Below are positions 20,211 through 60,366 of a DNA stretch of 64,000 nucleotides, piece by piece; the first letter of the stretch is position 1; each line of letters begins with the position of its first letter. This DNA is from Zygnema circumcarinatum SAG 698-1b (Eukaryota > Plantae > Zygnematophyceae): assembly GCA_037447605.1 (NCBI GenBank), contig CM074811.1, positions 1,426,001-1,490,000 on the forward strand. The letters are read 5' to 3'. The notes under the pieces were generated by a model. That model worked only from the letters and a program-made list of their open reading frames with translations. It searched no databases and had not been told where the DNA came from. The position numbers were made by a program, and so were the translations under genes.

Positions 20211-20983
20211 CGGCGGGTCGCGCGGCTCTTTGCAGCGGCAGACGTCGGCGCTTCCGTCAGCCGGCGGCCGCCATATCATCCAATGGGAGGGAGCCACGTG
20301 ACGAGACGCGGGGCCTGGCGGCCAGCGCCCCGAGCCGTAAGCCAATTGCAAAATGCCACGTGGAAACAGCAAGAGGAAGTAGTAGCTGACGTGGAACGTG
20401 TCGGTGGGATCTGATTGGTCCTAAATGTCGGTAACAATCGGAGAATGTCGGCGGGTCAAGCCGCTCGCGATTGGGTCCGAGGGTGGCTGTACGGACGAAG
20501 TAGTGGACGTGACGTTTGATTTGTCTTTTTGCCGCTTAATGACATCAGCAACAAACTCCGAGTTTCCAGTTTTCAGTTTGCAGTTTCCGGCGGCCCCATG
20601 GGCCCATAGGCCCCAGTGGGGGTCCCCATACTGCAAGCTATGGGGCTATTGGGCCTATGGCGGATGGTGGCCATGGCCATGGCCCACACGGGCCATGGCA
20701 TGCATCATGCCATGCGCCATGCGTGCTGGGCATAACATAGAATGCGTGGATAGAGAAAGGAACTGGGGTAAAGCACCCTCCAATGTGAGAGCCAACCAGC
20801 ATGAAGGTTACGGACCTCAGCCCTCCATAGGGGACAGAGTGCCGAATAGTTTGGGCCCGCTCTCGGGCCAATAATTTCATATATGTCACCGAGTACATGG
20901 TACAGACTAAGTCCCTCGTCAGCCAGTGGTTCCCTAGCTCCTGCTTACCCTCCACACTGTAAATGATCAACAACGTATCTCTA

Positions 20984-21040
20984 CCCCCCCCCCCCCCCCC
21001 CCCCCCCCCNNNNNNNNNNCCCCCCCCCCCCCCCCCCCCC
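20984..21040. other. Assembly gap (10 N at 21010-21019) flanked by poly-C runs
   Basis: N characters are in the sequence. Confidence 0.97.
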
Positions 21041-21652
21041 CTTCCCACCACCTTCCTCATTTCTCTTACTTGCTCCATCACACACATGCACTCTTTCTGT
21101 ACAACCTGAGAGAAGCCCCTCCTTGAGAAGGCGCCTCAGCATAGTCTCGCATTTGAGGTGCATCAGACATTATTGCATGACTACGCCGCCTGAGTCAAAA
21201 ACCCAAAATAGCAGAGCATTGCTGTGGAGCCTACACATCCCTTTAATCCTCAAAGATGTAAACCTCCACCTCGCCCTTCAGGAAGCAAATGCTGACATCA
21301 GCATGTGCAGCGCAGTGGACGCGGATATTCTGCGAAAGACCTCCTCGTGTTGGAGGCTCTGCAGATTCACCAGTTGAATGTTGAAACCTTTTGGGAGAGC
21401 TGTTCACCAGAACTCGACAAGCTTAAGATGTGTGCTGGGATTCAGCACCCCCCAGTCAAACATCCCCTGCAGGAGACGGATAACCCTCCCCACCATAGAT
21501 TTAGCTCAGAGACAGCAACCTGGAGGAGAGTTCAGCCTAAAGACCTGAAACAACTGAGAAACAAAGAAGCGAATAGAAAAATGGACCCGAACAACCCAAC
21601 CGTTGGTTACCTTGTTCGTCCACAAGGCAAGGCAATGAAGCCGATTTCCTGA

Positions 21653-30600: not shown

Positions 30601-31118
30601 ATGGGGGCCATTAAGGGTAACCGCGGACCTCCAACAGCGGCCGACCCAGAGGTTCGACGACTAACTGGTTGGAAGGCAGAAGTTGGCCCAGGGGAAGTAA
30701 GCTGAGGAGCGGCAGCCAGTGATGCTGAGCCCCATTTAAGGCTCGTACCACCACCAATAGGGTCCGAAATAGCGGGCTCCTCCAGTTTGTAAACCTTCCG
30801 CCGCCGACGCCTCCGACGAGGGGACTTAAGCCCATCCAGCAGAAAAGTGCCAACAATAGAATCTGCTCGAGCCTCGGCAAGCTCGGCGTCCGACTGTGCA
30901 ATTGCAGCACTGGCAGCGCCGGTTCCTTGTTCGAAGTGCGCATTATTTCGTCTCCTTCTGTCCTTCCGCGAATTAGACTTAAACAATTCAGCAGGTTCAG
31001 GCGCATTTTGGAGGGAATCAAAAGCGCTGGCAGGGCCCAGAATCTTCTCAAATGCAGCGGCTGCATCCTCTCGGTCGCTGTTCGCACGTGCAATACCGAA
31101 GTTCCGGAAATTAAACAT
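21653..31118 (-). CDS. Formin (FH1 polyproline + FH2) with a very long low-complexity N-terminal region
   Basis: Exon 1 ORF 31118-~27250 ends in polyproline FH1 and AGTIWDG. FH2 exons include LEAKKAQNIEIAMK, LLKYAPREDE, FAGPVEELGPAEQ, VPRLERKLRMLKF, DIGNKLNEGTNRG (~24440-24480), GFMHYLCKV, LLDFYEDF and NDFVLLFKKAHAENE. Stop at 21653. Confidence 0.9.
22735..22825. repeat. Compound (GA)n / GGGGAGAGGGAGAGAGAGAGAGGC repeat in a formin intron
   Basis: Three copies of ggcgggg(a/c)gagggagagagagaga. Confidence 0.8.
25780..25855. repeat. (GA)n microsatellite in a formin intron
   Basis: Direct reading of the sequence. Confidence 0.8.
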
Positions 31119-35900: not shown

Positions 35901-38900
35901 CTGGCGCTGGCTCTGGTTGTGGCTGTGGCTCTGCCTCTGTCTCTGTCTCTGGCGCTGGCTCTGGCTGTGGCTCTGCCTCTGTCTCTGGGTGCTGGCTCTG
36001 GTTGTGGTTGTGTCTCTGTCTCTGTCTCTGTCTGGCGCTGGCTCTGGTTGTGGTTGTGGCTCTGTCTCTGTCTCTGGCGCTGGCTCTGGTTGTGGTTGTG
36101 GCTCTGTCTCTGTCTCTGGCGCTGGCTCTGGTTGTGGCTGTGTCTCTGCCTCTGTCTCTGTCTCTGGCGCTGGCTCTGGTTGTGGTTGTGGCTCTGTCTC
36201 TGTCTCTGGCGCTGGCTCTGGTTGTGGCTGTGTCTCTGCCTCTGTCTCTGTCTCTGGCGCTGGCTCTGGTTGTGGTTGTGGCTCTGTCTCTGTCTCTGGC
36301 GCTGGCTCTGGTTGTGGCTGTGTGCTCTGCGCTGGGCTCTGGCTGTGGTTGTGGTTGTGGCTCTGTCTCTGTCTCTGGCGCTTGCTCTGGTTGTGGCTGT
36401 GTCTCTGCCTCTGTCTCTGTCTCTGGCGCTGGCTCTGGTTGTGGCTGTGTCTCTGCCTCTGCCTCTGTCTCTGGCGCTGGCTCTGGTTGTGGTTGTGGCT
36501 CTGTCTCTGTCTCTGGCGCTGGCTCTGGTTGTGGCTGTGTCTCTGCCTCTGCCTCTGTCTCTGGCGCTGGCTCTGGTTGTGGTTGTGGCTCTGTCTCTGT
36601 CTCTGTCTGGTTGTGGCTGTGGCTGTGCCTCTGCCTCTGTCTCCTGGCGCTGGCTCTGGTTGTGGCTGTGGCTGTGCCTCTGCCTCTGTCTCTGTCTCTG
36701 GCGCTGGCTCTGGTTGTGGCTGTGTCTCTGCCTCTGCCTCTCTGTCTCTGGCTGGCTCTGGTTGTGGTTGTGGCTCTCTCTCTGCCTCTGGCGCTGGCTC
36801 TGGCTGTGGTTGTGGCTCTGTCTCTGTCTCTGGCGCTGGCTCTGGTTGTGGTTGTGGCTCTGTCTCTGTCTCTGTCTCTGGCGCTGGCTCTGGTTGTGGC
36901 TGTGTCTCTGCCTCTGCCTCTGTCTCTGGCGCTGGCTCTGGTTGTGGCTGTGGCTCTGTCTCTGTCTCTGGCGCTTGCTCTGGTTGTGGCTGTGTCTCTG
37001 CCTCTGTCTCTGTCTCTGGCGCTGGCTCTGGTTGTGGCTGTGGCTCTGTCTCTGTCTCTGGCGCTGGCTCTGGTTGTGGTTGTGGCTCTGTCTCTGTCTC
37101 TGGCGCTGGCTCTGGTTGTGGCTGTGGCTCTGTCTCTGTCTCTGGCGCTGGCTCTGGTTGTGGTTCTGCCTCTGTCTCTGTCTCTGGCGCTGGCTCTGGT
37201 TGTGGCTGTGTCTCTGCCTCTGCCTCTGTCTCTGGCGCTGGCTCTGGTTGTGGTTGTGGCTCTGTCTCTGTCTCTGGCGCTGGCTCTGGTTGTGGCTGTG
37301 TCTCTGCCTCTGCCTCTGTCTCTGGCGCTGGCTCTGGTTGTGGTTGTGGCTCTGTCTCTGTCTCTGGCGCTTGCTCTGGTTGTGGCTGTGTCTCTGCCTC
37401 TGTCTCTCTGTCTCTGGCGCTGGCTCTGGTTGTGGTTGTGGGTTGTGGTTGTGGCTCTGTTCTCTCTGTCTCTGGCGCTGGCTCTGGTTGTGGCTGTGTC
37501 TCTGCCTCTGCCTCTGTCTCTGGCGCTGGCTCTGGTTGTGGTTGTGGCTCTGTCTCTGTCTCTGGCGCTGGCTCTGGTTGTGGCTGTGTCTCTGCCTCTG
37601 TCTCTGTCTCTGGCGCTGGCTCTGGTTGTGGTTGTGGCTCTGTCTCTGTCTCTGTCTCTGTCTCTGGCGCTGGCTCTGGTTGTGGTTGTGGCTCTGTCTC
37701 TGTCTCTGGCGCTGGCTCTGGTTGTGGCTGTGGCTCTGTCTCTGTCTGTGGCTCTGTCTGTCTGTCTCTGGCTCTGGCTCTGGTTGTGGCTGTGTCTCTG
37801 CCTCTGTCTCTGTCTCTGGCGCTGGCTCTGGTTGTGGCTGTGGCTCTGTCTCTGTCTCTGGCGCTGGCTCTGGTTGTGGTTGTGGCTCTGTCTCTGTCTC
37901 TGGCTCTGGCTCTGTCTCTGTCTCTGTCTGGCGCTGGCTCTGGTTGTGGCTGTGTCTCTGCCTCTGTCTCTGTCTCTGGCGCTGGCTCTGGTTGTGGCTG
38001 TGGCTCTGTCTCTGTCTCTGGCGCTGGCTCTGGTTGTGGTTGTGGCTCTGTCTCTGTCTCTGGCGCTGGCTCTGGTTGTGGCTGTGGCTCTGTCTCTGTC
38101 TCTGGCGCTGGCTCTGGTAGTGGCTGTGTCTCTGCCTCTGCCTCTGTCTCTGGCGCTGGCTCTGGTTGTGGTTGTGGCTCTGTCTCTGTCTCTGGCGCTG
38201 GCTCTGGTTGTGGCTGTGTCTCTGCCTCTGTCTCTGTCTCTGGCGCTGGCTCTGGTTGTGGTTGTGGCTCTGTCTCTGTCTCTGGCGCTGGCTCTGGTTG
38301 TGGCTGTGTCTCTGCCTCTGTCTCTGTCTCTGGCGCTGGCTCTGGTTGTGGTTGTGGCTCTGTCTCTGTCTCTGGCGCTGGCTCTGGTTGTGGCTGTGTC
38401 TCTGCCTCTGTCTCTGTCTCTGGCGCTGGCTCTGGTTGTGGTTCTGGCTCTGTCTCTGTCTCTGGCGCTGGCTGTGGTTCTGGCTGTGTCTCTGCCTCTG
38501 TCTCTGGCTCTGGCTCTGGTTGTGGTTGTGGCTCTGTCTCTGTCTCTGGCGCTGGCTCTGGTTGTGGCTGTGTCTCTGCTCTGTCTCTGTCTCTGGCGCT
38601 GGCTCTGGTTGTGGTTGTGGCTCTGTCTCTGTCTCTGGCGCTTGCTCTGGTTGTGGCTGTGTCTCTGCCTCTGTCTCTGTCTCTGGCGCTGGCTCTGGTT
38701 GTGGCTTGTGGCTCTGTCTCTGGTTGTGGTTGTGGCTCTGTCTCTGTCTCTGGCGCTGGCTCTGGTTGTGGCTGTGTCTCTGCCTCTGCCTCTGTCTCTG
38801 GCGCTGGCTCTGGTTGTGGCTGTGTCTCTGCCTCTGTCTCTGTCTCTGGCGCTGGCTCTGGTTGTGGTTGTGGCTCTGTCTCTGTCTCTGGCGCTTGCTC

Positions 38901-41900
38901 TGGTTGTGGCTGTGTCTCTGCCTCTGTCTCTGTCTCTGGCGCTGGCTCTGGTTGTGGCTGTGTCTCTGCCTCTGTCTCTGTCTCTGGCGCTGGCTCTGGT
39001 TGTGGTTGTGGCTCTGTCTCTGTCTCTGTCTCTGGCGCTTGCTCTGGTTGTGGCTGTGTCTCTGCCTCTGCCTCTGTCTCTGGCGCTGGCTCTGGTTGTG
39101 GCTGTGTCTCTGCCTCTGCCTCTGTCTCTGGCGCTGGCTCTGGTTGTGGCTGTGGCTCTGTCTCTGTCTCTGGCGCTGGCTCTGGTTGTGGTTGTGGCTC
39201 TGTCTCTGTCTCTGGCGCTGGCTCTGGTTGTGGCTGTGGCTCTGTCTCTGTCTCTGGCGCTGGCTCTGGTTGTGGTTGTGGCTCTGTCTCTGTCTCTGTC
39301 GCTGGCGCTGGCTCTGGTTGTGGCTCTGTCTCTGTGTCTCTGTCTCTGGCGCTGGCTCTGGTTGTGGCTGTGTCTCTGCCTCTGTCTCTGGCTGGCTCTG
39401 GTTGTGGCTGTGGCTCTGGTCTGCCTCTGTCTCTGGCGCTGGCTCTGGTTGTGGTTGTGGCTCTGTCTCTGTCTCTGGCGCTGGCTCTGGTTGTGGCTGT
39501 GTCTCTGCCTCTGCCTCTGTCTCTGGCGCTGGCTGTGGCTGTGCCTCTGCCTCTGTCTCTGGCGCTGGCTCTGGTTGTGGCTGTGTCTCTGCCTCTGTCT
39601 CTGTCTCTGGCGCTGGCTCTGGTTGTGGCTGTGTCTCTGCCTCTGTCTCTGTCTCTGGCGCTGGCTCTGGTTGTGGTTGTGGCTCTGTCTCTGTCTCTGG
39701 CGCTGGCTCTGGTTGTGGCTGTGTCTCTGCCTCTGCCTCTGTCTCTGGCGCTGGCTCTGGTTGTGGTTGTGGCTCTGTCTCTGTCTCTGGCGCTGGCTCT
39801 GGTTGTGGTGTGTGGCTCTGGCGCTGGCTATGGTTGTGGTTGTGGCTCTGTATCTGTCTGTGGAGCTGGCTCTGGTTGTGGCTGTGTCTCTGCCTCTACC
39901 TCTGTCTCTAGCGCTGGCTCTGGTTGTAGTTTGTGGCTCTGTCTCTCTGTCTCTGGCGCTGGCTCTGGTTGTGGCTGTGTCTCTGCCTCTGTCTGGCGCT
40001 GGCTCTGGTTGTGGTTCTGCCTCTGTCTCTCTCTGTCTCTGGCGCTGGCTCTGGTTGTGGCTGTGTCTCTGCACCTCTGCCTCTGTCTCTGGCGCTGGCT
40101 CTGGTTGTGTTTGTGGCTCTGCCTCTGTCTCTGGCGCTGGCTCTGGTTGTGGCTGTGTCTCTGCCTCTGCCTCTGTCTCTGGCGCTGGCTCTGGTTGTGG
40201 TTGTGGCTCTGTCTCTGTCTCTGGCGCTGGCTCTGGTTGTGGCTGTGTCTCTGCCTCTGTCTCTGTCTCTGGCGCTGGCTCTGGTTGTGGCTGTGTCTCT
40301 GCCTCTGTCTCTGTCTCTGGCGCTGGCTCTGGTTGTGGTTGTGGCTCTGTGTCTCTGGCTCTGGCGCTGGCTCTGGTTGTGGCTGTGGCTCTGCCTCTGT
40401 CTCTGTCTGGCTCTGGTTCTGGTTGTGGCTCTGCCTCTGTCTCTGTCTCTGGCGCTGGCTCTGGTTGTGGCTGTGTCTCTGCCTCTGTCTCTGTCTCTGG
40501 CGCTGGCTGGTTGTGGTTGTGGCTCTGTCTCTGTCTCTGGCGCTGGCTCTGGTTGTGGCTGTGTCTCTGCCTCTGCCTCTGTCTCTGGCGCTGGCTCTGG
40601 TTGTGGTTGTGGCTCTGTCTCTGTCTCTGGCGCTGGCTCTGGTTGTGGCTGTGTCTCTGCCTCTGTCTCTGTCTCTGGCGCTGGCTCTGGTTGTGGTTGT
40701 GGCTCTGTCTCTGTCTCTGGCGCTGGCTCTGGTTGTGGCTGTGTCTCTGCCTCTGCTCTGTCTCTGGCGCTGGCTCTGGTTGCTCTGTCTCTGTCTCTGG
40801 CGCTGGCTCTGGTTGTGGCTGTGTCTCTGCCTCTGCCTCTGTCTCTGGCGCTGGCTCTGGTTGTGGTTGTGGCTCTGTCTCTGTCTCTGGCGCTGGCTCT
40901 GGTTGTGGCTGTGGCTCTGTCTCTGTCTCTGGCGCTGGCTCTGGTTGTGGTTGTGGCTCTGTCTCTGTCTCTGGCGCTGGCTCTGGTTGTGGCTGTGTCT
41001 CTGCCTCTGTCTCTGTCTCTGGCGCTGGCTCTGGTTGTGGTTGTGGCTCTGTCTCTGTCTCTGGCGCTGGCTCTGGTTGTGGCTGTGTCTCTGCCTCTGT
41101 CTCTGTCTCTGGCGCTGGCTCTGGTTGTGGCTGTGGCTCTGTCTCTGGTTGTGGTTGTGGCTGTGGTCTCTGGCTGGCTCTGGTTGTGGCTGTGTCTCTC
41201 TGCCTCTGTCTCTGTCTCTGGCGCTGGCTCTGGTTGTGGCTGTGGCTCTGTCTCTGTCTCTGGCGCTGGCTCTGGTTGTGGTTGTGGCTCTGTCTCTGTC
41301 TCTGGCGCTGGCTCTGGTTGTGGTTGTGGCTGTGGCTCTGTCTCTGGCGCTGGCTCTGGTTGTGGCTGTGTGTCTCTGCCTCTGTCTCTCTGTCTCTGGC
41401 GCTGGCTCTGGTTGTGGCTGTGTCTCTGCCTCTGTCTCTGTCTCTGGCGCTGGCTCTGGTTGTGGGTGTGGCTCTGTCTCTGTCTCTGGCGCTGGCTCTG
41501 GTTGTGGTTGTGTGGCTCTGTCTCTCTGTCTCTGGCGCTTTGGCTCTGGTTGTGTGGCTGTGTCTCTGTCTCTGCCTCTGTCTCTGTCTCTGGCGCTGGC
41601 TCTGGTTGTGGTTGTGGCTCTGTCTCTGTCTCTGGCGCTGGCTCTGGTTGTGGCTGTGTCTCTGCCTCTGTCTCTGTCTCTGGCGCTGGCTCTGGTTGTG
41701 GTTGTGGCTCTGTCTCTGTCTCTGGCGCTGGCTCTGGTTGTGGCTGTGTCTCTGCCTCTGTCTCTGTCTCTGGCGCTGGCTCTGGTTGTGGTTGTGGCTC
41801 TGCCTCTGTCTCTGGCGCTGGCTCTGGTTGTGGCTGTGTCTCTGCCTCTGTCTCTGTCTCTGGCGCTGGCTCTGGTTGTGGTTGTGGCTCTGTCTCTGTC

Positions 41901-43971
41901 TCTGGCGCTGGCTCTGGTTGTGGCTGTGTCTCTGCCTCTGCCTCTGTCTCTGGCGCTGGCTCTGGATGTGGTTGTGGCTCTGTCTCTGCCTCTGTCTCTG
42001 GCCTCTGTCTGTGGTCTCTGTCTCTGTCTCTGGCGCTGGCTCTGGTTGTGGCTGTGTCTCTGCCTCTGCCTCTGTCTCTGGCGCTGGCTCTGGTTGTGGT
42101 TGTGGCTCTGTCTCTGTCTCTGGCGCTGGCTCTGGTTGTGGCTGTGTCTCTGCCTCTGCTCTGTCTCTGGCGCTGGCTCTGGTTGTGGTTGTGGCTCTGT
42201 CTCTGTCTCTGGCGCTGGCTCTGGTTGTGGCTGTGCCTCTGTCTCTGTCTCTGGCGCTGGCTCTGGTTGTGGTTGTGGCTCTGTCTCTGTCTCTGGCGCT
42301 GGCTCTGGTTGTGGTTGTGGCTGTGGCTCTGCCTCTGTCTCTGTCTCTGGCGCTGGCTCTGGTTGTGGCTGTGTCTCTGCCTCTGCCTCTGTCTCTGGCG
42401 CTGGCTCTGGTTGTGGTTGTGGCTCTGTCTCTGTCTCTGGCGCTGGCTCTGGTTGTGGCTGTGTCTCTGCCTCTGCCTCTGTCTCTGGCTGTGTCTCTGC
42501 CTCTGTCTCTGTCTCTGGCGCTGGCTCTGGTTGTGGTTGTGTCTCTGCCTCTGTCTCTGGCGCTGGCTCTGGTTGTGGCTGTGTCTCTGCCTCTGTCTCT
42601 GTCTCTGGCGCTGGCTCTGGTTGTGGCTGTGTCTCTCTGCTCTGTCTCTGTCTCTGTCTCTGGCGCTGGCTCTGGTTGTGGGTGTGGGCTCTGTCTCTGT
42701 CTCTGGCGCTGGCTCTGGTTGTGGCTGTGTCTCTGCCTCTGCCTCTGTCTCTGGCGCTGGCTCTGGTTGTGGCTGTGTCTCTGCCTCTGCCTCTGTCTCT
42801 GTCTCTGGTTGTGGCTGTGTCTCTGCCTCTGTCTCTGTCTCTGGCGCTGGCTCTGGTTGTGGCTGTGTCTCTGCCTCTGCCTCTGTCTCTGGCGCTGGCT
42901 CTGGTTGTGGTTGTGGCTCTGTCTCTGTCTCTAGCGCTGGCTCTGGTTGTGGCTGTGTCTCTGCCTCTGCCTCTGTCTCTGTCTCTGCGCTGGCTCTGGT
43001 TGTGGCTCTGTCTCTGCCTCTGCCTCTGTCTCTGTCTCTGGCGCTGGCTCTGGTTGTGGCTGTGGCTCTGTCTCTGTCTCTGTCTCTAGCGCTGGCTCTG
43101 GTTGTGGCTGTGTCTCTCTGCCTCTGTCTCTGGCGCTGGCTCTGGTTGTGGTTGTGGCTCTGTCTCTGTCTCTGTCTCTGTCTCTGGCGCTGGCTCTGGT
43201 TGTGGCTGTGGGCTCTGTCTCTGTCTCTGGCGCTGGCTCTGGTTGTGGCTGTGGCTCTGTCTCTGTCTCTCTGTCTCTGGCGCTGGCTCTGGTTGTGGTT
43301 CTGGTCTCTGTGCTGGCTCTGGTGTGGCTGTGCCTCTGCCTCTGTCTCTGGCGCTGGCTCTGGTTGTGGTTGTGGCTCTGCCTCTGTCTCTGTCTCTGGC
43401 GCTGGCTCTGGTTGTGGTTGTGGCTGTGTCTCTGCCTCTGTCTCTGTCTCTGGCGCTGGCTCTGGTTGTGGTTGTGGCTCTGCCTCTGCCTCTGTCTCTC
43501 TGGCGCTGGCTCTGGTTGTGGTTGTGGTTCTGTCTCTGTCTCTGTCTCTGTCTCTAGCGCTGGCTCTGGTTGTGGCTGTCTCTGCCTCTGCCTCTGTCTC
43601 TCTGTCTCTGTCTCTGTGGCGCTGGCTCTGGATTTGTGGTTGTGGCTCTCTGTCTCTGTCTCTCTGGCGCTGGCTCTGTGGTTGTGGCTGTGTCTCTGCC
43701 TCTGCCTCTGTCTCTGTCTGGCGCTGGCTCTGGATGTGGTTGTGGCTCTGTCTCTGTCTCTGGCGCTTGCTCTGGTTGTGGCTGTGTCTCTGCCTCTGCC
43801 ACTGTCTCTGGCGCTGGCTCTGGTTGTGGTTGTGGCTCTGTCTCTGTCTCTGGCGCTGGCTCTGGTTGTGGCTGTGTCTCTGCCTCTGTCTCTGTCTCTG
43901 GCGCTGGCTCTGGTTGTGGCTGTGGCTCTGTCTCTGTCTCTGGCGCTGGCTCTGGTTGTGGCTGTGGCTCT
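32955..43971. repeat. About 11-kb satellite built from related hexamers (CTCTGT/CTCTGC/CTCTGG/CGCTGG/TTGTGG/CTGTGG) in mainly 42- and 48-bp units
   Basis: Units gtctctggcgctggctctggttgtggttgtggctctgtctct and gtctctggcgctggctctggttgtggctgtgtctctgcctctgtctct. A is almost absent from the + strand. Confidence 0.97.
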
Positions 43972-45844: not shown

Positions 45845-47109
45845 CTTAGTAGCTGAGCACGAAACCGAAGAGCGGGAGTGTGGACTATTTCTGCTCTGTG
45901 CACGCTTGTTCTACATATTGATAAACAGATATGAACATTAGAAGTTCTCGAAATAGGTACAAACGCTCACAAGTTCCAATGATTAGTGGTGCTTACGTAC
46001 GAAAAGATACAAAACAAGGAACCATTGAACCATTACTTATTGTTTTTGTGAAAACATTCGTATTGCAGCCCCTCTGGATATGGCAGGGCCTCATGCAATA
46101 TGTTTTTGTTTATGTTGCAATATGTTTCTCATTCAATTAGGCGAACATGCTCATAATGCACTCTACTTCTACACGATAACACATTTCTCGACTCAATGCA
46201 CTTTCTGTCAGAATCGAGTTCTTCAAAGTTGAACATGCCAACGAAGGAAAAGGGAAATGCTTAGCCAGTGATTTCATCGAGCATTTTTTTCTTTTGCAAG
46301 AAGCTTGCAGTTTTGACTCAAGTAAATTTGTAGTGGCATCTTAAAGCTTCGCTTTATTAGCGGTTCGATGAAGCAAGCGTGAGCTGTTGCTTGCTTCACA
46401 AGTTGCTGCTGAGCAATCAGAACTCAATTGTGCAACTATTTTTACACCCACCCCCCCGCCCCCCCCTCCCCTTTTTTTTTTTTGGACGTGGAGCTCATAC
46501 TGGTTTATAGGTGAACCCTAAGGCTCGCTACCTGCGATGCGAAGGTCACCATTTTAAAACTGAGAATTCTCTGAAGAAAGCCGGGCACTGACACATTCCT
46601 CCAACTCTCATATTCTCTCCATCTCAAAGCGCTTACCTGCCAGACTAGACGAGAAGCTGAGGCCTCACGAAGAGCAGCAGGACCTGGTGTCGAGCGTGAT
46701 GCCTAGGTTGTGATAAAGCTCCGAAGTGGCGGAGCGATAGCCGCTGTAGCATGAGCAATGGCGACCATGCTCACGCCTCACATCGATGGCAACTTCAAAA
46801 TTCCGAGTTCGAACATAGACACGTACTGGACAGTACAACTCTGCGGAGGCTGCAACTTCACCGGACCCTGTGCAGCTCGCTCATCAGATGTGGCGGCAGC
46901 CATCGTGTCAAAATAGAATGCTACCCGTGCGAAGGAACTAATTGCAAAAGTTTGCATTCCGCATACACTTTCAGTACCAGTACAGTTATGTCATCTCGGA
47001 GACCTGAGGCACGGGATCTTGCTCTCTGCATGCCGTGAAAGGATTAGCATCGATGTGCTACTGAGGATTCTGCTGCTGCAGTAGGGTCACTTGCCAGCTG
47101 GCTGAAGCA

Positions 47110-50100
47110 ATGGCTGCCCGAGAGGACGGCCTCAAACGAGTGGCAGATTTACCAGACTCTGTCCAGCTTCGGATATTGTCGCTGCTCACTGCAGGCTCTC
47201 TGGAAGTGCCCCGCCCTGCAAGTAAGGAGTCTCCTGCACGAGTAAAGGGAAATTCTGGTGGTGATCATGCGGGTTCTGGACCCCAAAACGCCCTGGTGCG
47301 AGGCAAGCTGTTTCACTCAGACTGCAGGCAAGAGGGAGGCATTTGTTTGGAAAGACCAGGAGCTTTGAGAGCTGTGGCAGATCTTGTGAAGACGGGAGTG
47401 GCAATCGTTGATGACTATGTAGGGAAGGCGGCAGTAAGTTTTCTTCACGCCCAGAAGCATGTCTAGTCAAACTTGAAGAATGTCTGAAGCAGCTTACTCT
47501 GTCTGGAAGATGCATTACGTTGAACAGATATCCTTGAGAATACTAGGTAGCCACTGCATTCACTAAGGTGAGACTTGTAAGGCTAGTCAACATAAATTCT
47601 CGCATGTGACCGGAATCATGACCGCCAATTTCGCAAGATAGCGACTTTGGAGATCTCCTTAGCATCAGATTCTCTCAGCAAAGGACTTTGACTCTGATCA
47701 GATAGCTCGATAGTGCTTAATCGTAGTGTTAGGCCGAAGGCAATGGACGAAGTTTTCATTTTCCCCATGGTTGTTAGTTGTATTGCAAGGGAGGTGAAGC
47801 CAAACAATTTCCCTCGCTGAATGTTGCCTGAGCTTGTCAAGAGCGCATTACCAAGCGATAGACTTAATTGAAGCCTGTGCGATACCTGTGCAGCTTTCTG
47901 CTGTTCGAGCTGAAATAGAGAGTTATCCAAGTTTGCACGGGGCAGCAATGGGTGGCTCGTTTGGAGCAGCTGTATGGAACGATGAAAAATCACGCGGTGA
48001 CCGTGTAGCGTGGCTGCATGAGGGCAAGGAATTGGCCAATGGAAGAACTGCTGTGGCGCAAGTTATTGGCGCTCTCCAGAGTCTCAAACCGCTGCTTGCT
48101 GAACACGGGTTTGATGTGGGTGGCAAAACTTCATTTCAACTTGCCTGCTATCCGGTAAGCTTCATTATCCTTTCCGAAACAATGCTCAGTGACCAGTGAC
48201 GTTTGAATCTTTGAGGGCACGGTGTATGTTTGTATTTCAATTCAGTGACGACACTGTCAGCGTTCTTCCTTGAACTCTCAGATTCTTTAGTGGCTGTGTT
48301 TCAGCAGCCACTGAAAATTCATTGAAATATACGGGGATAACCTACCATTGATGTTGGTATTCGGAGTTGTGTCCCATCTTTAGAGATTTGTTTACTTATA
48401 GTGAAAAATAGAGTTGAGTAAGATAAAGCATCCATGCTATGTTTGGGAGAAGTACGAGCTCTGGGCTCGTATGTGATTCGGGTCTCTGTGGATGTGTAGG
48501 CATCCGGCGACGTGCACAATTGGTATTCCATATGAGAGCGTATACAACGAATTTTCAGTTCCCAAGCAGGCCATCTGGTTGAATGATTGCAGGGAAACGG
48601 AGCACGCTATGTTCGCCACATGGACCAGTCTCCGACCTGTCCATTACGAAGAATAACCGCTATTTACTATGCAAATCCGGAGTGGGATGCAGGTTCCATG
48701 GGAGGCCACCTAAGGCTCTATCGTAAAGCGAAAGTTAGCACGATAGCCAGGTGTGCCTCTCCCTGCAACAATGCTGAACAGGGCTCAAGTGTTCCTGTAG
48801 GGTATTCTGCGAAAGAGTCTAAAGAGACAAGGCTTTGTCAGGTAGGTGCACATGTGTCCAATTTACCTCTTGAGGAGGGCAGCATTCGCAACAATGGAAA
48901 AACGCATTGGAAGATGGCAGCAGAGCAGGCACAGGTTAGAGATGGACAGGATGGGCTTGAAGAGGAGTGGCTGGATGTATGCCCATTGGGTGACCGGTTA
49001 GTTGTCTTCCAGAGCAACATGTGGCATGAAGTGCTTCCAACCTACGCACCGCGCTATGCGATTACTGCATGGTTCTCCGCTCTCGCAGTGCAGGCACCAT
49101 CTGCAGAGAAGGTACAGATTTCAGAGGAGGTGCAAGTTTTCGATCTTCTTTCATCAGAGGACCAAAGTCATCCGCAGTCTGAAAATTTGACTGAGTCCAA
49201 CGTTGAGGGCGACATTCCTTCCATCAATGAGCACCTGCTTCTCAGGGGCAAGCTGGAAGACACACTTACTCTGAAAAAACCAACAATCTCGGGGGCAGAA
49301 TTCCAATTGAAACCTTGCACGGTCATTCCCAGTGCTCAAACGCCGTGTGTCAACGTGCCGGAAAGGAAGGCTTTAGGAGGTGTGAGCTTCCTCAGGAGAG
49401 AAGGTGCAGAAGGCGGGGATAAAGGGTCCATGGAAGAGATTTTTGTCTCTGTCGCATGCTTCCGGGACAGTGAGTGTCGGTGGACCATCCACAACATGCT
49501 GAAAATGGCAGAGTTCCCGCACAGAGTGAAAGTGGGAGTTGTGTGGCAAGTGGATCTGCTGGAAGATTCTCAAATCATGCAACTAGACCTCTTGGGAGCA
49601 GAGGCAGGTCAGCAAGTTCGGCATACCATTTTGGATTGGAGAGAGGCAACAGGGCCATGCTTGGCGCGGCATTTGGCGCAGAAGCTGTGGCAAGGAGAGG
49701 ACTTTTTCTTGCAGGTGAATTCTGCTCCAAGGGATCAGCGCTCCTATACCGCCCTGTTGCATTCCTACTCTTTCACAAACTTCCCAAGTCTTGAAGGGGA
49801 CAGAGGCTGCACTCACTCGCGTTCAGACAACTAGCAAGCGAGTACAAAATCTAGCAGTATGCAGAATATGAAAGCGCTTGGTCTCATTCCCTAGGGCATT
49901 GATTTTCCTTGCTCTACGCTGCAATGCTGAAGCTAGTGCCGTTGGATGAAACTGCTTTATTTCTTCCTTCCTCCATATTACTTCCCCTTTCTTTGTAATA
50001 GAGGCATGGTCTTTACCATGTCCACTTTCCAAATTCGCCATAATTAGGCCATAACGTACATCAAACGTAAGCTAATTTGTTTACTGAAATTGTCTGTCCT

Positions 50101-51291
50101 TAATGCTTTTTCGTTCTGTGACTAAGCCAGGAAGGGGTTCTTCATGAACCATGACAAACTCCGCTTTTTAAACTTTACCTTACACCAACAAAATTCAAAG
50201 TTTTCATGTCTTGCTAGTGGTTCTGTTTGAATGCGCTTTGCAGATTGACTCTCACATGCGCTTCTCTCCAAACTGGGATTCTCGACTCATCAAAATGCTT
50301 GACGAGGCTGAAACGATCTCCCCGAAGCCCGTCATCTCCACATATCCTCCTGATTACACAGGTCTCGGGCAGGCTGCACATTTTTCGTCTGAGCCCCAAC
50401 CAGTGCTTTTGTGTGCTTCTGGGTTTGGGCCGGATGGGCTTCTCCGTGTTCGAGGCAGACGTCTGAAGGAGCAACCTTCAAGACCCCCTCCGTCACTATT
50501 CTGGGCTGCAGGTTATTCGTTCTCAAGAGCAGCACTCATCCATGAAGTAAGTTGCAACTGGTAGTGCTTCTCTAGGCTATCCACCTGCTATCAAGTCCTC
50601 GTTGAAACTAGTCTCAATAGGGCCCAGCTTGTTCATTTGGGAAGCTGTAGCGAAGACTCAGACGTCTGCATTTCCCTCCCCTGCTTTCAGAATAATTGCA
50701 GTCTGCTGGTTGACCTATCTCATAGATGGGGCAGTTTTTATGCAACTCAGCCGAGTGCGAGATATGCAGCAAGGACAATCTGGGTGAACTACCTTTGAAT
50801 TGAAATGCCGTTTTGTTTTCCTACTTTTGCAGGTGCCCTATTCCCCCAACCTCCCATTCCTCTTCTTCGGTGAAGAGATGGCTATGGCTGTTCGAATGTA
50901 CACACATGGCTGGGACTTTTTCTGCCCTTCAGAGACTGTTATCGCTCATCTCTGGTCGAGGAACCATAGGCCCACATTCCAGACTGTGAGAGAAGATAAC
51001 TCTTCCGCGTCGGCAAAAGCTGTTTCGCAGCTTCAAGTTAAGGGACTGCTGTGCTCAAGAAAGGACAGTGCTGGGTTGTGCAGTTTTTGCTGTGATGATA
51101 GAGAAATGGGAGAGGGGCCAAGCTGGGACAAAGCTGCTTTGGGGTCCTATGGGCTAGGAGGCAGCAGATCTGTTGAAGAGTTTGCCGAGAATTGTGGCGT
51201 GGACTTCTGCAGGAAGTGTATCACGGAGAGAGCTCTGCTTGGAGGATATGAGGAAGACCTATTCCTCAATGCAGAACTGGAAGCTGTGTAG
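47110..51291 (+). CDS. Fusion protein: EGLN/PHD (PhyA-like) 2OG-Fe(II) prolyl 4-hydroxylase + Gnt1-like hydroxyproline GlcNAc-transferase, about 822 aa
   Basis: Exons 47110-47433, 47894-48154, 48593-49714, 50244-50546, 50833-51291, all phase-0 GT-AG. Hydroxylase: RGDRVAWL, FQLACYP|GNGARYVRHMD, RRITAIYYANPEW, GGHLRL, DRLVVFQS, WHEVLP, RYAITAWF. Glycosyltransferase: IFVSVACFRDSEC, ATGPCLARHLAQ, FLQ|IDSHMRF, VISTYPP, FWAAGYSFS, PFLFFGEE, RMYTHGWD, YGLG. No signal peptide. Confidence 0.88.
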
Positions 51292-52117
51292 CTTTTCACA
51301 CTGCTTCCACTTTGCACGTGTCTTATGGATGCCCAAGTCACTGTTGGATTTGCCTGATGCGGATAGAAACCAGGTGATGCAGAATTTTCCCAAGGTCAAG
51401 TTTATGATCCACACAATAATGCTGTGGAGCTTGAATCAACCACCTTAACTAACATTCATCGTGAAATCAATGCCGCATCCTTTGTGCCCTAATGAACTCG
51501 CAGCATCGTATGACAATGCCCACTGAGCTTCTAGTTGTGCGCTAATTGTAAGATCGTTCCCTAAGTCAAATCCATTTTAGATCAACCCCAAATCGACCCC
51601 TGACCTAAGCCTTTCCATTCCCCATCCATCCCATCCCATCCGTGTTCCTCGTGGTTCCCCATGATTAAGCTTTCAATTTAGAACGTAACATATGATACCA
51701 TCGCCATCTCAACCAGTCCCAATTCACTCCCCTTCTCCTAAACTCCCGAGGGCAGCAGCAGCACTCCATCGCAGTCCTCCATAGGCTTCCCCCCTTCCGC
51801 CCCCCCTTTCGAGCTAGCAAGCGACAAGCCACCCCAACTTTCCACAAGCCGAATTTGATAGCTGGACCTGAACCCACACCGGGGCATATTTTTCAAAACA
51901 AGTACAGCGCCCCCGCTTTTTACGTGTAGAAGTGCTCGTTGCGGAGTACCGAGTCGTCGTTCGGCGAGCGGGAGAGCGGCTCTGGCGCCGCCTTGCGAGA
52001 GGAAGGTGGTAGAGAAAGGGAGGGAGAAAGAGGGGCAGAGAGGTCAGTGTGGGAGGGCTAGCAGGAGGGGGCAGGCAGCCATAGCCTGAGAGCAGCGAGC
52101 CGAGTGAGGGAGGCAAG

Positions 52118-54891
52118 ATGCAGAATCAGGACTTTCAGAACGGCGGCATGGATGTAGATGCAAGTAAGGGCGACGCGTCGGCAGGGAAATCGTCCAGTTC
52201 AGGGTTAGTTGGAAGAGCAGCCAACCCTAGCTGGTCTTGTGGGCATCTCGCTAGCTTGGCTCCTCGTTGGTATGTGTCGTTGAAGCTTGCATGTAGCAGG
52301 AGGCATGAGTGGTCAGTCCTTGGACAGCAGCAATCGAGCAGTCAAGGTCAGTGTGGCTAGCTAACACAGACTTACCTGGCCTCCTCTTCGTTATGGTAGA
52401 GGGAAGATTTTCATTGGCGGCCTTTCATGGGAGACAACCACAGGTGCGTCTGGGCACCCAATAACCGGAGCGGGCAAGAACAGAGCAGAGTAGAAGAAGT
52501 TGTCCCACGGTGGTTGCTGCTTATCCTAGAATTGTGCTCTCTAATTTTAGGTAGAATTTATGCGTGCTTCGTAGAATTGGTTCACGTTCTGCAGCTCTTC
52601 TTTAATGAGGGTGGAATATCTGAGATACACAGGAGTACAGCCTGTGTCTTAGAGCACAGCCGCAGAGATCCTCTACATCAGAGGGATTGGGACTGCAGGA
52701 TGCAGCAGAACTACGTGCAGATCAGTTTGCAGGTTATGTATGGTTGATTATGGTAAATGTATTTTCGTTAGCTTCCTCTTCAGGTTTGTCTGTTACTGCC
52801 GTAAGTTGTGCTCAAGGGAGCCGAATTCGACGAATTCTGAACCTAATTTCGTTCATGTTTTTGAAAGTTATGTCTTCACGGGGACTGTTGGAGAAATTCT
52901 GGAGCTAGACTAAAGTCCCTGGGAGGTCAGGCCCTTATGTTTTGGCGACAGAAACATCGATGTTGTTTTTGCTTGTTACCACACACAGCAGACCTTTTTT
53001 CGGAATCTTACCGTTTCTTTAATTGAGCAGAAAATCTCACTAGTCACTTTGGCAAGTACGGCACCATCACGGATGCGGTTATCATGAAGGACCGAGCTAC
53101 TGGTCATCCTCGTGGATTTGGATTTGTTACCTTTTCTGATCCTGCCGTATGCGACCGGGTTGTCCAAGACAAGCATGTCATTGATGGACGGACTGTAAGT
53201 CGGATGCGGCCTTTACCCTGTTACATGACTCTTTTTTCTGAGTGGATTGAGGCCGAGATTATTTTTGGTTTCACTTCCTAAAAAGCTGTCAAGGAATCGC
53301 CAGAAGTCGTTAGGCTGCTATTTTGTCACTGTTTCAGTTTTTTTACATTTGAATTGCCTATCTGTCCTTGCAGGTGGAGGCAAAGAAATCTGTACCGAGA
53401 GAGAGCATGGCTGTAACAACTCGGGGGCCGCGAACAAAAAAGATATTTGTTGGTGGCATCCCGCCCTCCATTACCGAAGGTATGTTTAAAGTTTACTTTA
53501 CGAGTCTGGAAGCGTTATAGGTGATGAGAAACGTGATTCGGATTTCCTTATTGCAATTTCTTCTGCTGCAGTTCAGTGGCGCTTTCGCTCTTATGTTTCC
53601 TGAACAGAACTTTGCGGGAACGAAAAGTTTATTTGAATGTTTTTTGAGCCTGCATGTTCATTAAAAAATGCCGTATTTATTTTCAGGAATTCATCATCTT
53701 TGTCGTTTCTCAGTGGGAATCTTGAAATTCACAGGACAGAGGTCAATTGTCTAACTTCTGCCACTCTGTTACATGGTCTGTTGGTTTGTATGGGCGTATT
53801 GCTGACATGTCCGTTGGTTTGTGTTGGCCAGAGGAATTCAAACAATATTTCTCCAAGTTCGGAAATGTCATTGAGCAGCAGATTATGCAGGACCATAGCA
53901 CAGGACGGTCCAGAGGCTTTGGCTTTGTCACGTTTGACAGTGAGCAAACAGTGGAGGACATTCTATCTCAGGGGAAAATGCACGAATTGGGAGGGAAGCA
54001 GGTGAGGGTTGTGCGGTTCCGAACTTTTGTATTAGCTGTATAGTTCAGCGATCAGTCTGCTTCAGGGCTACTGCCTTTCTTTTTGTTTTCATACTGTAGA
54101 AGTAACTTATGCGGTAGCAACTTTTTTGACTTGCTAATGTCTGTTAATTTGCACGACATAGTGATCTCGTAGGATTTGACGAGTCATTCTTGAAGTGATT
54201 GCACCATTTAGTGCAGTCAAGCTTGTATAAGTCATGTTATTGTACTTACATGAGGAATCACGTTTTCATGTTTGTTCTTCTACAGGTGGAGATAAAGAAA
54301 GCAGAGCCTAAGAGGACAGAGCCAGGTGTAGAGAGAGGAGGTTACGGTGCTGCCAGGGGCGGTGGATATGGGGGTGGTGGTTATGCTGCAGCAGGCTATG
54401 GAGATGGTTATGGCGTAGCAGGTGGCTACGGTGGGAGTGGAGGTTACCGTTCTGGAGGTGGTTATGGGGGTCGGGGCGGTTATGGTGGTGGTGCAGGTGG
54501 ATATGGGGGTGGGGGTGCTGGTTATGGTGGAGGCGGCTATGGCGGTGGTGGGGGTTATGGTGGCGGGTATGGTAGCAGTGGGGGAGCTAGTGGCTATGGT
54601 GGAGGGAGCTATGGTGGCTCCCTGGGATCCTACGGTGGAGGACTGAGCAGCAGCAGCTATGGTGGCAGCATGATGGGTGGTTATGGCGATGTTGGGGATG
54701 GCTATGGTTCCGGCATGGGTGGATATGGTAGCTATGGTGGAAGCTCCGGTGGCGGCTATGGTGGTGGGTATGGAAGCGGAAGCGGCGCATACGGAGGCAG
54801 CATGGGAGGAGGTGGTGCCTATGGCAGCCGGGGAGGATATGGCAGTGCTGGCGGAAGCAACGGGCGGTACCACCCGTATGGGCGCAATTAA
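52118..54891 (+). CDS. Two-RRM, Gly/Tyr-rich hnRNP A/B / Musashi-like RNA-binding protein
   Basis: KIFIGGLSWETT, MKDRATGHPRGFGFVTF, KKIFVGGIP, GRSRGFGFVTF, VEIKKAEPK, a GGYG-rich tail and a terminal RYHPY (PY-NLS-like). Confidence 0.92.
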
Positions 54892-56049
54892 CTGCTGCTG
54901 CAGCTTTTCTGGCGAGAGAGTAGAGAAGTAGTAGTAGTAGTGTTGGGAGTATGGTTGTAAAGCATTGTGAAGTAGGAGCATGCTCGTTCAATTCACTGTT
55001 TAATGTACCCTTGTAAGGAACCGCTTATGGCCATTTGGTTTAGAAATCCAATCCTCATGACAGGAGCCTTGGCTGTCTGAGACCCCCTTTCTCCCCGGTT
55101 TTGAGACAAGGTCCTGACTCTAAGATTGGCCGTAGCATGGAGGATGCAGGTGGTCCGGAATTAGGGGCAACCTGAATGCTACCCGTTGTTTTGCCCTTTT
55201 GGCATTTGAGCAGAGAATCTGTGCAGCAGTCCAGTACTATATGCCGACAGGTGCAGGAAGAAAATGTCGATTTTGAAATGTAAGCTGCAGGGAGGATGCT
55301 TGCCTGCCTGTCATTTGTGACACAAATTAGGCCCTTGTGGGCGGTTGCCAACTGCCTGCGGTCGTTGGTGAGCAGGTAGGAGCCTCTTTCTCTCACTCTG
55401 TCTGGGAGGATTCAAGAAATTCAACGAATTGTATGTAATTTTTTTGCGCCGCGGGGCGGTAATGCTTGGATGTGCCTTAAGCGATTCAGGGGCGCTAGTG
55501 ATCGCTGCGTCCTCACATCCATTTTTGCCTTGATGTTGGTTTTGTTGGGTGCTTTGCTGGGCCCTATTTTCACGAAGTTTTGAGGCACTTGTACCTTCCC
55601 CTTTTCTTTTTTTGAGTGTGCTCCGAGATAGCGGCTATCCTTCGGTCGCCAGATTTAGGTACAGGGTAGCCGGAGCTTGTTTCATTCTATGAGGTAAAGC
55701 GAAGGATTTGGAGCTTAGTTTAGTTTAGTTAAGAACAGTTTCGCCAAGAGCCCGTAATTAAGAATGCAGAGCGGCTCTGAGATTTGATTGGCTTGTTACG
55801 AAAAAGGAGATAGAAATGTACGATTGAATTTTCTAAATCTGACAGGTAGGCAAAGCTTCCCCCAAACTGTCTACGTATCTCTGCCTCCAGTCCTGAGTTA
55901 CGTACGCGTTACAAGCAAATTTTGTTTCCCTAACAACGTTCTCAAACAATAATCACAACGACCGAAACGTAAAGTCTCTCAGCAAATTGAAATCAGATTG
56001 TAATTGACTCGAAATCACTATCTCCCAATCGAAGCACTTGCTTGCTGAA

Positions 56050-57580: not shown

Positions 57581-59750
57581 GTGGCGGGCCTGTACCTGGC
57601 GAGCGCGGTCAGGTTGGGGCTGGCAACCGACCACTGAATCCAATGGCTGGCAGTAAACCGTTGTATCCAATGGCTGGAAACCGTCCACTGAATCCAGGCG
57701 GGCAACCAACAGTTGTATGCAATGGCTGGCGACCGACCACTGCATCCAATGGATGGCAGCCACCGGTTGTTTGCAATGGCTGGCAATCAACCGTTGTATG
57801 CAATGGCTTGCAACCGACCATTGAATCCAATGGCTGGCAATCAACCGTTGTATGCAATGGCTTGCAACTGGCCACTGATTCCAATGGCTGGTGGCCACCG
57901 GTTGATGCAATGGCTGGAAACCAACCATTGATTCCAATGGCTGGCAATCAACCGTTGTATGCAATGGCTGGCAACCGACCACTGAATCCAATGGCTGGCA
58001 GCCACCGGTTGTTTGCAATGGCTTGAAACCAACCATTGAATCCAATGGCTGGCAATCAACCGTTGTATGCAATGGCTGGCAACCGACCACTGAATCTAAT
58101 GGCTGGCAATCAACCGTTGTATGCAATGGCTGGCAACCAACCACTGAATCCAATGGCTGGCAGCCACTGGTTGTTTGCAATGGCTGGAAACCAACCATTG
58201 AATCCTATGGCTGGCAATCAACCGTTGTATGCAATGGCTGGCAACCGACCACTGAATCCAATGGCTGGCAGCCACCGGTTGTTTGCAATGGCTGGAAATC
58301 AACCATTGAACCCAATGGCTGGCAGTCAACCGTTGTATCCAATGGCTGGCAACCGTTCATTGAATCCAATGGCAGGCAATCAACCGTTGTTTGCAATGGC
58401 TGGCAACCAACCGTTGAATCCAATGGCTGGCAATCAACCGTTGTATGCAATGGCTGGCAACCGACCACTGAATCCAATGGCTTGCAGCCACTGGTTGTTT
58501 GCAATGGCTGGCAACCAACCGTTGAATCCAATGGCTGGCAATCAACCGTTGTATGCAATGGCTGGCAACCGACCACTGAATCCAATGGCTGGCAGCCACC
58601 GGTTGTTTGCAATGGCTGGAAACCAACCATTGAATCCAATGGCTGGCAATCAACCGTTGTATGCAGTGGCTGGCAACCGACCACTGAATCGAATGGCTGG
58701 CAGCCACCGGTTGTTTGCAATGGCTGGAAACCAACCATTGAATTAAATGGCTGGCAATCAACCGTTGTATCCAATGGCTGGCATCCGACCACTGAATCCA
58801 GGCGGGCAACCAACAGTTGGATCTAATGGCTGGCAACCGACCACTGCATCCAATGGATGGCAGCCACCGGTTGTTTGCAATGGCTGGCAACCAACCGTTT
58901 TATCCAATGGCTGGCAATCAACCCTTGTATGTAATGGCTGGCAACCGACCATTGAATCCAATGGCTGGCAATCAACCGTTGTATGCAATGGCTGGCAACC
59001 GACCACTGAATCCAATGGCTGGTAGCCACCGGTGGCTGGCTGGCAACCGCCACCGGTTGTATGCAATGGCTGGCAACCACTGAATCCAATGGCTGGCAGC
59101 CACCGGTTGTTTGCAATGGCTGGAAACCAACCGTTGAATCCAATGGCTGGCAATCAACCGTTGTATGCAATGGCTGGCAACCGACCATTGAATCCAATGG
59201 CTGGCAATCAACCGTTGTATGCAATGGCTGGCAACCGACCACTGAATCCAATGGCTGGCAGCCACCGGTTGTTTGCAATGGCTGGAAACCAACCATTGAA
59301 TCCAATGGCTGGCAATCAACCGTTGTATGCAATGGCTGGCAACCGACCACTGAATCCAATGGCTGGCAGCCACCGGTTGTTTGCAATGGCTTGTTTGAAC
59401 CCAATGGCAATGGCTGGCTGGCCAACCGTTGAATCCAATGGCTGGCAATCAACCGTTGTATGCAATGGCTGGCAACCGACCACTGAATCCAATGGCTGGC
59501 AATCAACCGTTGTATGCAATGGCTGGCAACCGAGCACTGAATCCAATGGCTGGTAGCCACCGGTTGTTTGCAATGGCTGGCAACCGACTATTGAATCCAA
59601 TGGCTGGCTGTCAACCGTTGTATGCAATGGCTGGCAACCGACCACTGAATCCAATGGCTGGCAACCACCGGTTGTTTGCAATGGCTGGTGATCAACCATT
59701 GAATCCAATGGCTTGCAATCAACCGTTGTATGCAATGGCTGGCAACCGAC
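57080..59750. repeat. 27-bp tandem repeat array with higher-order (about 81-108 bp) periodicity, interrupted at ~57355-57618
   Basis: Unit variants ccaatggctggcaatcaaccgttgtat, gcaatggctggcaaccgaccactgaat, ccaatggctggcagccaccggttgttt and gcaatggctggaaaccaaccattgaat recur in a largely fixed order. Confidence 0.95.
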
Positions 59751-60366
59751 TGTTAGTAATGCTTGTCTAGGATCTACACATCAGGTGGAGCATGTGGCGC
59801 ATTCTGATTGGCCGCTGCATAGGCGCGGAGCGCTGTGATTGGTCGTGTTACGTGGCGCTCGGAGATGTACGTGATTGTACGGACGGGGAGCTCCAGAAAA
59901 CTCGCGGCGTTCCTTTTGCCGGAAAACTATTGGCTTGCAAGGCGCGCAGTGGCGTGACGTGACGGAGAGTGTTCCGGAAGTCACGTCACACTGTGACTAA
60001 TAAATTACGATGCAAATGAGCGAGCTAAAACCCTTAGTGCAGGCTGCTAGGTGCAGAGTAGAGGCTTGCCAGTGTGTGGTGAAGCTTTACAGCATAAGGG
60101 GGACACTCTTGTAGTGGAGTAGAGAAGCGCAGGAGGGGCTCTTGTTGTGTTCTTGTACTCCGTTTTGAAGTTAAGAGTTTTCAGCATTTGTGCATTCTCT
60201 TATCTTCTGAATCTTCGATCTGTTCATTCATTCTTTGCTTGGGGCAGTCTGTGCTTTGTGAGTGTGATTCTGTGTTTCCGCAAGGCTGGCGTCTCCTAGT
60301 CCAAGGAGTAGTGGGATGTCATCCTCGGAGGGATCCTCTACTAGGACCGGAGGCTCCACATCTACA
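59751..60366 (+). repeat. Putative 5' LTR (about 616 bp)
   Basis: TG...CA termini inferred from the array junction and the position before the PBS. The second LTR is not in the window. Confidence 0.7.

Follow-up and report, generated by a model that had tools for sequence, protein, structure and literature searches.

The hydroxylation and glycosylation of Skp1 is an oxygen-sensing system in protists. A dual-function PhyA/Gnt1 protein of the oomycete Pythium ultimum was reported by van der Wel, Gas-Pascual and West (Glycobiology 2019, as cited in PMC8724618, which also calls fusions of consecutive pathway enzymes frequent), and the activity of Pythium PhyA on Skp1 is restated in PMC7864055. 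The occurrence of pathway genes in green algae was pointed out in 2012 (PMC3515798), and loss of the pathway in land plants has been published (bioRxiv 10.1101/764241). Here we describe a gene at positions 47110-51291 (+) of a 64,000-nucleotide stretch of contig CM074811.1 from Zygnema circumcarinatum SAG 698-1b (hereafter the window) that, from its sequence, is very probably a PhyA–Gnt1 orthologue. We consider it likely that the gene encodes a soluble cytoplasmic bifunctional enzyme, the splice-gated and vertically inherited streptophyte-algal orthologue of the Pythium ultimum fusion. The gene is real and transcribed, and it adds a member to an enzyme family already known; it does not represent a new route of oxygen sensing. 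The first-pass annotation of this DNA had raised the possibility of an unrecognised oxygen-sensing route, a claim of novelty that does not survive, since the fusion is published for Pythium ultimum, widespread in algae, and annotated in Klebsormidium and Closterium.

Results

A hydroxylase and a glycosyltransferase in one reading frame

Five open segments of the plus strand join through GT..AG introns into an 822-codon reading frame, with an in-frame stop at 47062-47064 lying 5′ of the ATG. The features of the gene are as follows.

47110-47433, + strand: exon 1, aa 1-108, with the ATG, the N-terminal LP motif, a low-complexity linker and the start of the hydroxylase
47149-47187, + strand: conserved N-terminal motif LPDSVQLRILSLL, resembling the first helix of an F-box
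47894-48154, + strand: exon 2, aa 109-195, N-terminal half of the double-stranded beta-helix, terminating in ...QLACYP
48500-48592, + strand: alternative 93-nt 5′ extension of exon 3, acceptor TGTGTAG/GCAT
48593-49714, + strand: exon 3, aa 196-569, catalytic hydroxylase half (H204, D206, H340, R349), loop insert, interdomain linker and initial ~95 aa of the GT60 domain
48728-48964, + strand: loop insert of ~75-80 aa in the beta-IV/beta-V loop of the hydroxylase
49079-49426, + strand: interdomain linker of ~115 aa, poorly conserved, variable and gap-rich between the domains in the homologue alignment
50244-50546, + strand: exon 4, aa 570-670, core of the GT60 domain, including WAAGYSF and the metal-binding motif D571-S-H573
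50833-51291, + strand: exon 5, aa 671-822 and stop, end of the GT60 domain with FFGEE

The two domains meet in one uninterrupted exon, as had been claimed earlier: Pfam places both PF13640 (2OG-FeII_Oxy_3, E 1.8e-14) and PF11397 (E 1.8e-20) in a single open reading frame (ORF) at 48587-49834. Exon 4 (E 2.8e-20, profile positions 129-232) and exon 5 (E 3.1e-21, positions 230-351 of 352) continue the PF11397 match, so that the GT60 catalytic domain is complete over exons 3-5 (positions 2-351 of 352, each E ~1e-20). The exon 1 donor reads GCA/GTAAGT, and exon 2 can be aligned to homologues at RGDxxxW and QLACYP. Rechecking of the motif positions given by the first-pass annotation found all of them correct: HxD (H204-M-D206) at 48617-48625, the distal His340 codon at 49025-49027, R349 of RYAITAW at 49052, the start of the glycosyltransferase (GT) domain at ATG 49430 (MEEIFVSVACFRD), D571-S-H573 at 50247-50255, and the WAAGxSF and FFGEE motifs. 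No signal anchor or transmembrane segment was found in the fusion protein, whose N-terminus is hydrophilic and whose highest 19-residue Kyte-Doolittle mean is 0.93, in agreement with the earlier statement that a signal peptide is absent.

The hydroxylase half combines a double-stranded beta-helix, an HxD...H triad and a 2-oxoglutarate (2OG)-binding arginine, and bears neither a signal peptide nor a membrane anchor. Residues H204, D206, H340 and R349 align to H313, D315, H374 and R383 of human PHD2 (E 1.6e-12), and 36 of the 37 columns at least 85% conserved among 36 homologues are kept in the window protein. This half also matches Protein Data Bank (PDB) entry 6t8m (E 3e-10), which we take to be the DdPhyA(60-284) crystal structure of PMC7864055, the PDB chain being named only 'Prolyl 4-hydroxylase subunit alpha'. 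In the tree described below the protein falls in the same fused family as that of Pythium ultimum, supporting orthology to a characterised Skp1 hydroxylase. Assignment as a plant secretory collagen-type prolyl 4-hydroxylase was ruled out by the missing signal anchor and by PHD2 and 6t8m being the best structural relatives.

In the transferase half, 56 of the 57 GT columns at least 90% conserved are matched and the sole mismatch is a leading GTG translated as M, so that 57 of 57 are effectively kept. Golgi pp-GlcNAc transferases of family GT60 carry a signal anchor; the window domain is of the cytoplasmic type, with no hydrophobic segment and a position behind a cytoplasmic-type hydroxylase. 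A sequence search of solved structures detected no GT60 structure. The GT domain of the closest relative, 65.5% identical to that of the window, was modelled with AlphaFold (predicted local distance difference test score 92, predicted template modelling score 0.91), and the best PDB matches of this model are GalNAc-T2, T4, T1 and T12 and TgGalNAc-T3 (E 5e-10, probability 1.0). As judged from this relative's model, the DxH motif (D571-S-H573) would sit in a GT-A fold. This picture matches a GT-A transferase that has a DxH metal site, as published for Gnt1 (PMC8724618).

The fusion is widespread and vertically inherited in the green lineage

An exhaustive profile-free search returned 2144 relatives, and domains were counted in 272 fetched proteins. 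Both domains occur in 143 of these 272, with the hydroxylase first in 135 and the GT domain first in 8. Fused members include the streptophyte algae Klebsormidium nitens and Closterium sp. NIES-54, whose proteins are already annotated in NCBI; the chlorophytes Chlamydomonas eustigma, Volvox, Pleodorina, Parachlorella, Chlorella, Micractinium, Coccomyxa, Trebouxia, Elliptochloris, Bryopsis and Tetraselmis; the brown algae Ectocarpus, Laminaria and Ascophyllum; many oomycetes, including Globisporangium (Pythium) ultimum, Phytophthora, Peronospora, Saprolegnia, Aphanomyces and Achlya; and the cryptophyte Guillardia, the dinoflagellate Durusdinium and the chytrid Rhizophlyctis. Several members, including those of Ectocarpus and Phytophthora, carry the database label '[Skp1-protein]-hydroxyproline N-acetylglucosaminyltransferase'. 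No land-plant protein was among the 120 best matches of the closest relative, in keeping with the loss of the pathway published for land plants. The first-pass annotation had set the fusion in a plant-lineage genome; the gene appears to come from a streptophyte alga and not from a land plant, which leaves the view that land plants lost the pathway unchallenged. Among the relatives, P0001, P0002, P0013 and others of 1300-2460 aa contain two to four tandem GT60 domains, and one very long relative bears a peroxiredoxin/Tpa1-like annotation.

We built a maximum-likelihood tree of 42 proteins, rooted on the unfused Gnt1 of dictyostelids and other amoebozoans. The green (Viridiplantae) clade (support 99/99) is made up of a chlorophyte branch (98/93) and its sister, a streptophyte branch (98/96). 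In the latter the window protein and P0003 (100/96) join Closterium and P0021 (97/88), with Klebsormidium outside. Oomycetes group in one clade of their own and brown algae in another, the fused Pythium/Globisporangium ultimum protein lying within the oomycete clade. Neither half groups with unrelated families, and the PhyA/Gnt1-type placement that had been proposed for them is upheld. The tree indicates a streptophyte (zygnematophyte-like) algal gene that would have descended vertically in the green lineage. An origin from a contaminating protist, a concern raised in the first-pass annotation, or from a recent horizontal transfer is favored only by the abundance of the family in protists and appears extremely improbable: the gene tree mirrors the species tree and the long loop is common to the window, Closterium and P0021, which together argue for vertical inheritance and against contamination. 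The gene also contains spliceosomal introns, has an exon boundary after FLQ in common with the gene model of Closterium, and has all sampled words of exon 3 present in five public runs from two studies under one species label.

A loop insert marks the clade of the window gene

A clade-specific feature of the hydroxylase is the insert in the beta-IV/beta-V loop. Between GGxL and F..HEV the window protein has 98 residues, Closterium 95 and P0021 86, and P0003 shows a comparable insert in the alignment; the same interval spans 21-43 residues in the other 11 lineages measured (among them Klebsormidium, with 21, chlorophytes, oomycetes and brown algae), and PHD2 lacks residues at this point. The beta-IV/beta-V loop is considered likely to contact substrate (PMC7864055), and an insert of ~75 aa confined to one clade at such a position would be in keeping with an enzyme whose target for hydroxylation and glycosylation in this lineage is not Skp1. 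We regard such a change of target as improbable given the orthology with the characterised oomycete enzyme family and the conservation of the N-terminal motif and both catalytic cores across lineages. The gene product probably modifies Skp1 in the alga, as orthology predicts. An activity of PhyA-type hydroxylase and Gnt1-type GlcNAc transferase, probably on Skp1, had also been the reading of the first-pass annotation, and domains, catalytic residues, conserved columns and phylogeny give it good support.

Transcripts span both domains and use two acceptors of intron 2

We placed RNA contigs from four runs on 46500-51900. Junctions 47433>47894, 49714>50244 and 50546>50833 were seen in contigs of all four runs, exon 3 is contiguous, and two contigs (2483 and 2793 nt) span exon 1 to exon 5, placing both domains on one spliced mRNA. 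Transcripts ending between the two domains, an outcome that would have spoken against a fusion, were not seen. Two additional splicing solutions at the 5′ end were rejected. An upstream 5′ exon joined by 45910>46637 would require an intron ending CT..AC on the plus strand, which is GT..AG of a minus-strand neighbor, and an extra intron within exon 1 (donor 47222) mismatches the frames, and the RNA contigs run through this part without a break. The minus-strand neighbor has an intron at 45911-46636 (donor GTAAGC at 46636) and an exon from 46637 to ~47066 in head-to-head overlap with the 5′ part of the fusion gene, and RNA contigs merge both transcripts.

Intron 2 has two acceptors, at 48500 and 48593. 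Acceptor 48593 is demanded by homology and restores the conserved CYPGNGARYVRHMD; acceptor 48500 adds 93 nt with in-frame TGA codons at 48533-48535 and 48584-48586, and translation of the resulting isoform gives only 206 aa, stopping upstream of the catalytic HxD. The most-assembled form uses 48154>48500, a junction that each of the four runs has in its main contigs. Productive joining of 48154>48593 was found only in run X3, at a depth of 2.9 vs 4.42 and with a 28-nt anchor. The first-pass annotation needs one correction here: the intron 2 acceptor is alternative, and the form found across the four runs encodes a truncated protein.

These observations weigh against a gene that chiefly produces the bifunctional enzyme, as the isoform assembled in every run has a premature stop and the full-length frame rests on the junction contig of one run together with homology. 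The locus might instead be mainly a target of unproductive splicing from which little bifunctional enzyme is made, a possibility that we judge the less likely one. It could then be a switch that regulates the gene through alternative splicing and nonsense-mediated decay, or an initial phase of the loss of function completed in land plants, suggestions that we put forward tentatively. The closest relative, of another species, lends this some weight: its transcript contig L001 retains a matching intron tail with an in-frame stop, and the segments at the two acceptors, TGTGTAGGCAT and AATGATTGCAGG, are conserved between the two species, the remaining segment not being conserved. A chlorophyte-clade relative (L002, L003; SRR29268390, SRR29268391) likewise has two transcript forms of the orthologous gene, one intact (779 aa) and one frame-shifted after NPNWNPK to give 228 + 536 aa. 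However, this split point differs from the position of the premature stop in the window gene and may be noise, contig depths are too crude for isoform quantification and minor variants are dropped from contigs, and the near-complete retention of conserved columns argues that selection acts on the full protein. Predominantly unproductive splicing would in any case fit the identification of the enzyme as PhyA–Gnt1, which we retain. We conclude that use of the alternative acceptor is probably unproductive splicing, which may be regulated.

An N-terminal motif resembles the first helix of an F-box

Upstream of the hydroxylase, the N-terminal motif contains an LP pair that is invariant in all 14 aligned homologue N-termini. 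Near-identical motifs occur in Closterium (LPDAVQLRILSLL) and Klebsormidium (LPDVCQLRILSLL), and the streptophyte consensus across the three is DLPD(S/A/V)(V/C)QLRILSLL. Variants are found in brown algae (MALPAKLQxxILSW) and a chytrid (SLPNDLQFKILSLL), and the oomycete version is degenerate (LSPQLQALVEASL). The motif is carried by 40 of 109 long proteins starting with Met vs 1 of 89 short proteins (<260 aa, mostly bacterial-type PHDs). Carriers are hydroxylase-first fusions of streptophytes, chlorophytes, brown algae and the chytrid, and GT-first fusions lack the motif, as do bacterial PHDs.

A full F-box, a three-helix domain of ~45 aa, was considered and rejected. The Pfam F-box-like match (E 0.052, 13.8 bits vs a cut-off of 24.3) covers profile positions 2-20 of 47, the first helix only; among the 14 homologues two match F-box-like and one matches F-box, and a profile of the LP motif searched against the PDB found no F-box protein. 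An attractive hypothesis from these comparisons is that the motif may act as a short Skp1-docking helix, which if true would account for the specificity of the enzyme for its substrate and for a competition with F-box proteins. In the zygnematophyte-like clade a further layer of control would come from a conserved poison 3′ splice site in the hydroxylase domain. The more specific readings, one in which the LP helix is half an F-box through which the enzyme docks on free Skp1 at its F-box-binding face, the other in which the poison 3′ splice site gates the output of the oxygen sensor, are speculative and on balance doubtful. Neither the Skp1-docking nor the poison-splice-site idea was found in the literature searched.

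Other features of the window

An 11-kb satellite at 32955-43971 contains almost no A on the plus strand (AT skew ~-1, GC 0.60) and is built from a CTCTGG base unit with 42- and 48-nt higher-order periods (~1830 copies). This sequence cannot hold stop codons on either strand, and its huge ORFs (up to 3313 aa) are therefore composition artefacts. A second tandem array of 2.1 kb at 57618-59754 has a 27/54-nt period, ~40 copies of 54 nt and repetitive ORFs on both strands. Downstream of the fusion gene, ~52100-54900 (+) is a probable hnRNP-like gene with an RRM exon (RGFGFVTFDSEQTVEDIL) and, after it, a long tail rich in Gly and Tyr, and exons at ~1100-3000 (-) resemble the NTF2 domain of a G3BP-like protein (GNAFVQQYYRVL, FLQSFFLAPQEKGFYVLNDIFRYL). 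Near ~20900, within the ORF at 20638-21087 (-), a short N run (XXXX) in a G-rich stretch is probably an assembly gap or masking. The 1291-aa ORF at 27243-31118 (-) matched no Pfam family, and an Rfam search of the window gave no match.

Discussion

Orthology suggests how the encoded enzyme may work. The N-terminal PHD2-like 2OG/Fe(II) dioxygenase would use O2 to form 4-hydroxyproline on a conserved proline near the Skp1 C-terminus, and the GT60 domain would transfer alpha-GlcNAc from UDP-GlcNAc onto that hydroxyproline, starting a glycan predicted to tune the assembly of Skp1 with F-box proteins in SCF ubiquitin ligases. Expression is apparently gated by an alternative 3′ splice site that yields a prematurely terminated message.

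The presence of this gene indicates that a cytoplasmic pathway for hydroxylating and glycosylating Skp1 was retained in those streptophyte algae that are the nearest relatives of land plants. A pathway gene in a zygnematophyte-like alga allows the land-plant loss to be dated to the embryophyte stem or later, near the shift of plants to reliance on PCO/N-degron sensing. For plant evolutionary biologists the locus offers a defined gene for knockout in a zygnematophyte model, along with two testable leads in the F-box-helix-like docking motif and the premature-stop splice isoform that may regulate the enzyme.

Comparison with known systems places the window protein among fused PhyA–Gnt1 enzymes and sets it apart from the unfused relatives. 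Human EGLN1/PHD2 is the best solved match of the hydroxylase half and has an identical HxD...H...R arrangement, but it acts on HIF-alpha, has a MYND finger where the window protein has the LP motif, and lacks both a GT domain and the loop insert. The nearest solved fold to the GT60 domain is that of the polypeptide GalNAc-transferases (GT27), which share the GT-A fold and the DxH Mn2+ motif at only 14-18% identity; unlike the window protein, they are type II membrane proteins of the Golgi, have a lectin domain and transfer from UDP-GalNAc onto Ser/Thr. PhyA and Gnt1 of Dictyostelium and Toxoplasma have the same two catalytic domains and presumably catalyze the same reactions, but are encoded by separate genes; Gnt1 of dictyostelids and other amoebozoans aligns across the whole GT domain, and the present data give no support for an LP motif in the Dictyostelium and Toxoplasma proteins.

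The Pythium ultimum protein has the same domain order on one polypeptide, hydroxylase then GT60 (PF13640 and PF11397), and belongs to the same gene family, whereas oomycete proteins have a degenerate N-terminal motif, lack the ~75-aa loop insert and share ~40% GT-domain identity with the window protein (measured for Peronospora, Aphanomyces and Achlya); the alternative premature-stop isoform is a feature of the window gene when set against the Pythium system. Klebsormidium nitens P0296, annotated as 'N-acetylglucosaminyltransferase family protein', has the same fusion and a near-identical DLPDxxQLRILSLL motif with a 21-residue loop that lacks the insert. The Closterium sp. NIES-54 protein CAI7768170.1 (P0010), although its model is partial, joined to the gene upstream of it and extended into an intron, shares with the window gene the fusion, the near-identical motif, the loop insert and the exon boundary after FLQ.

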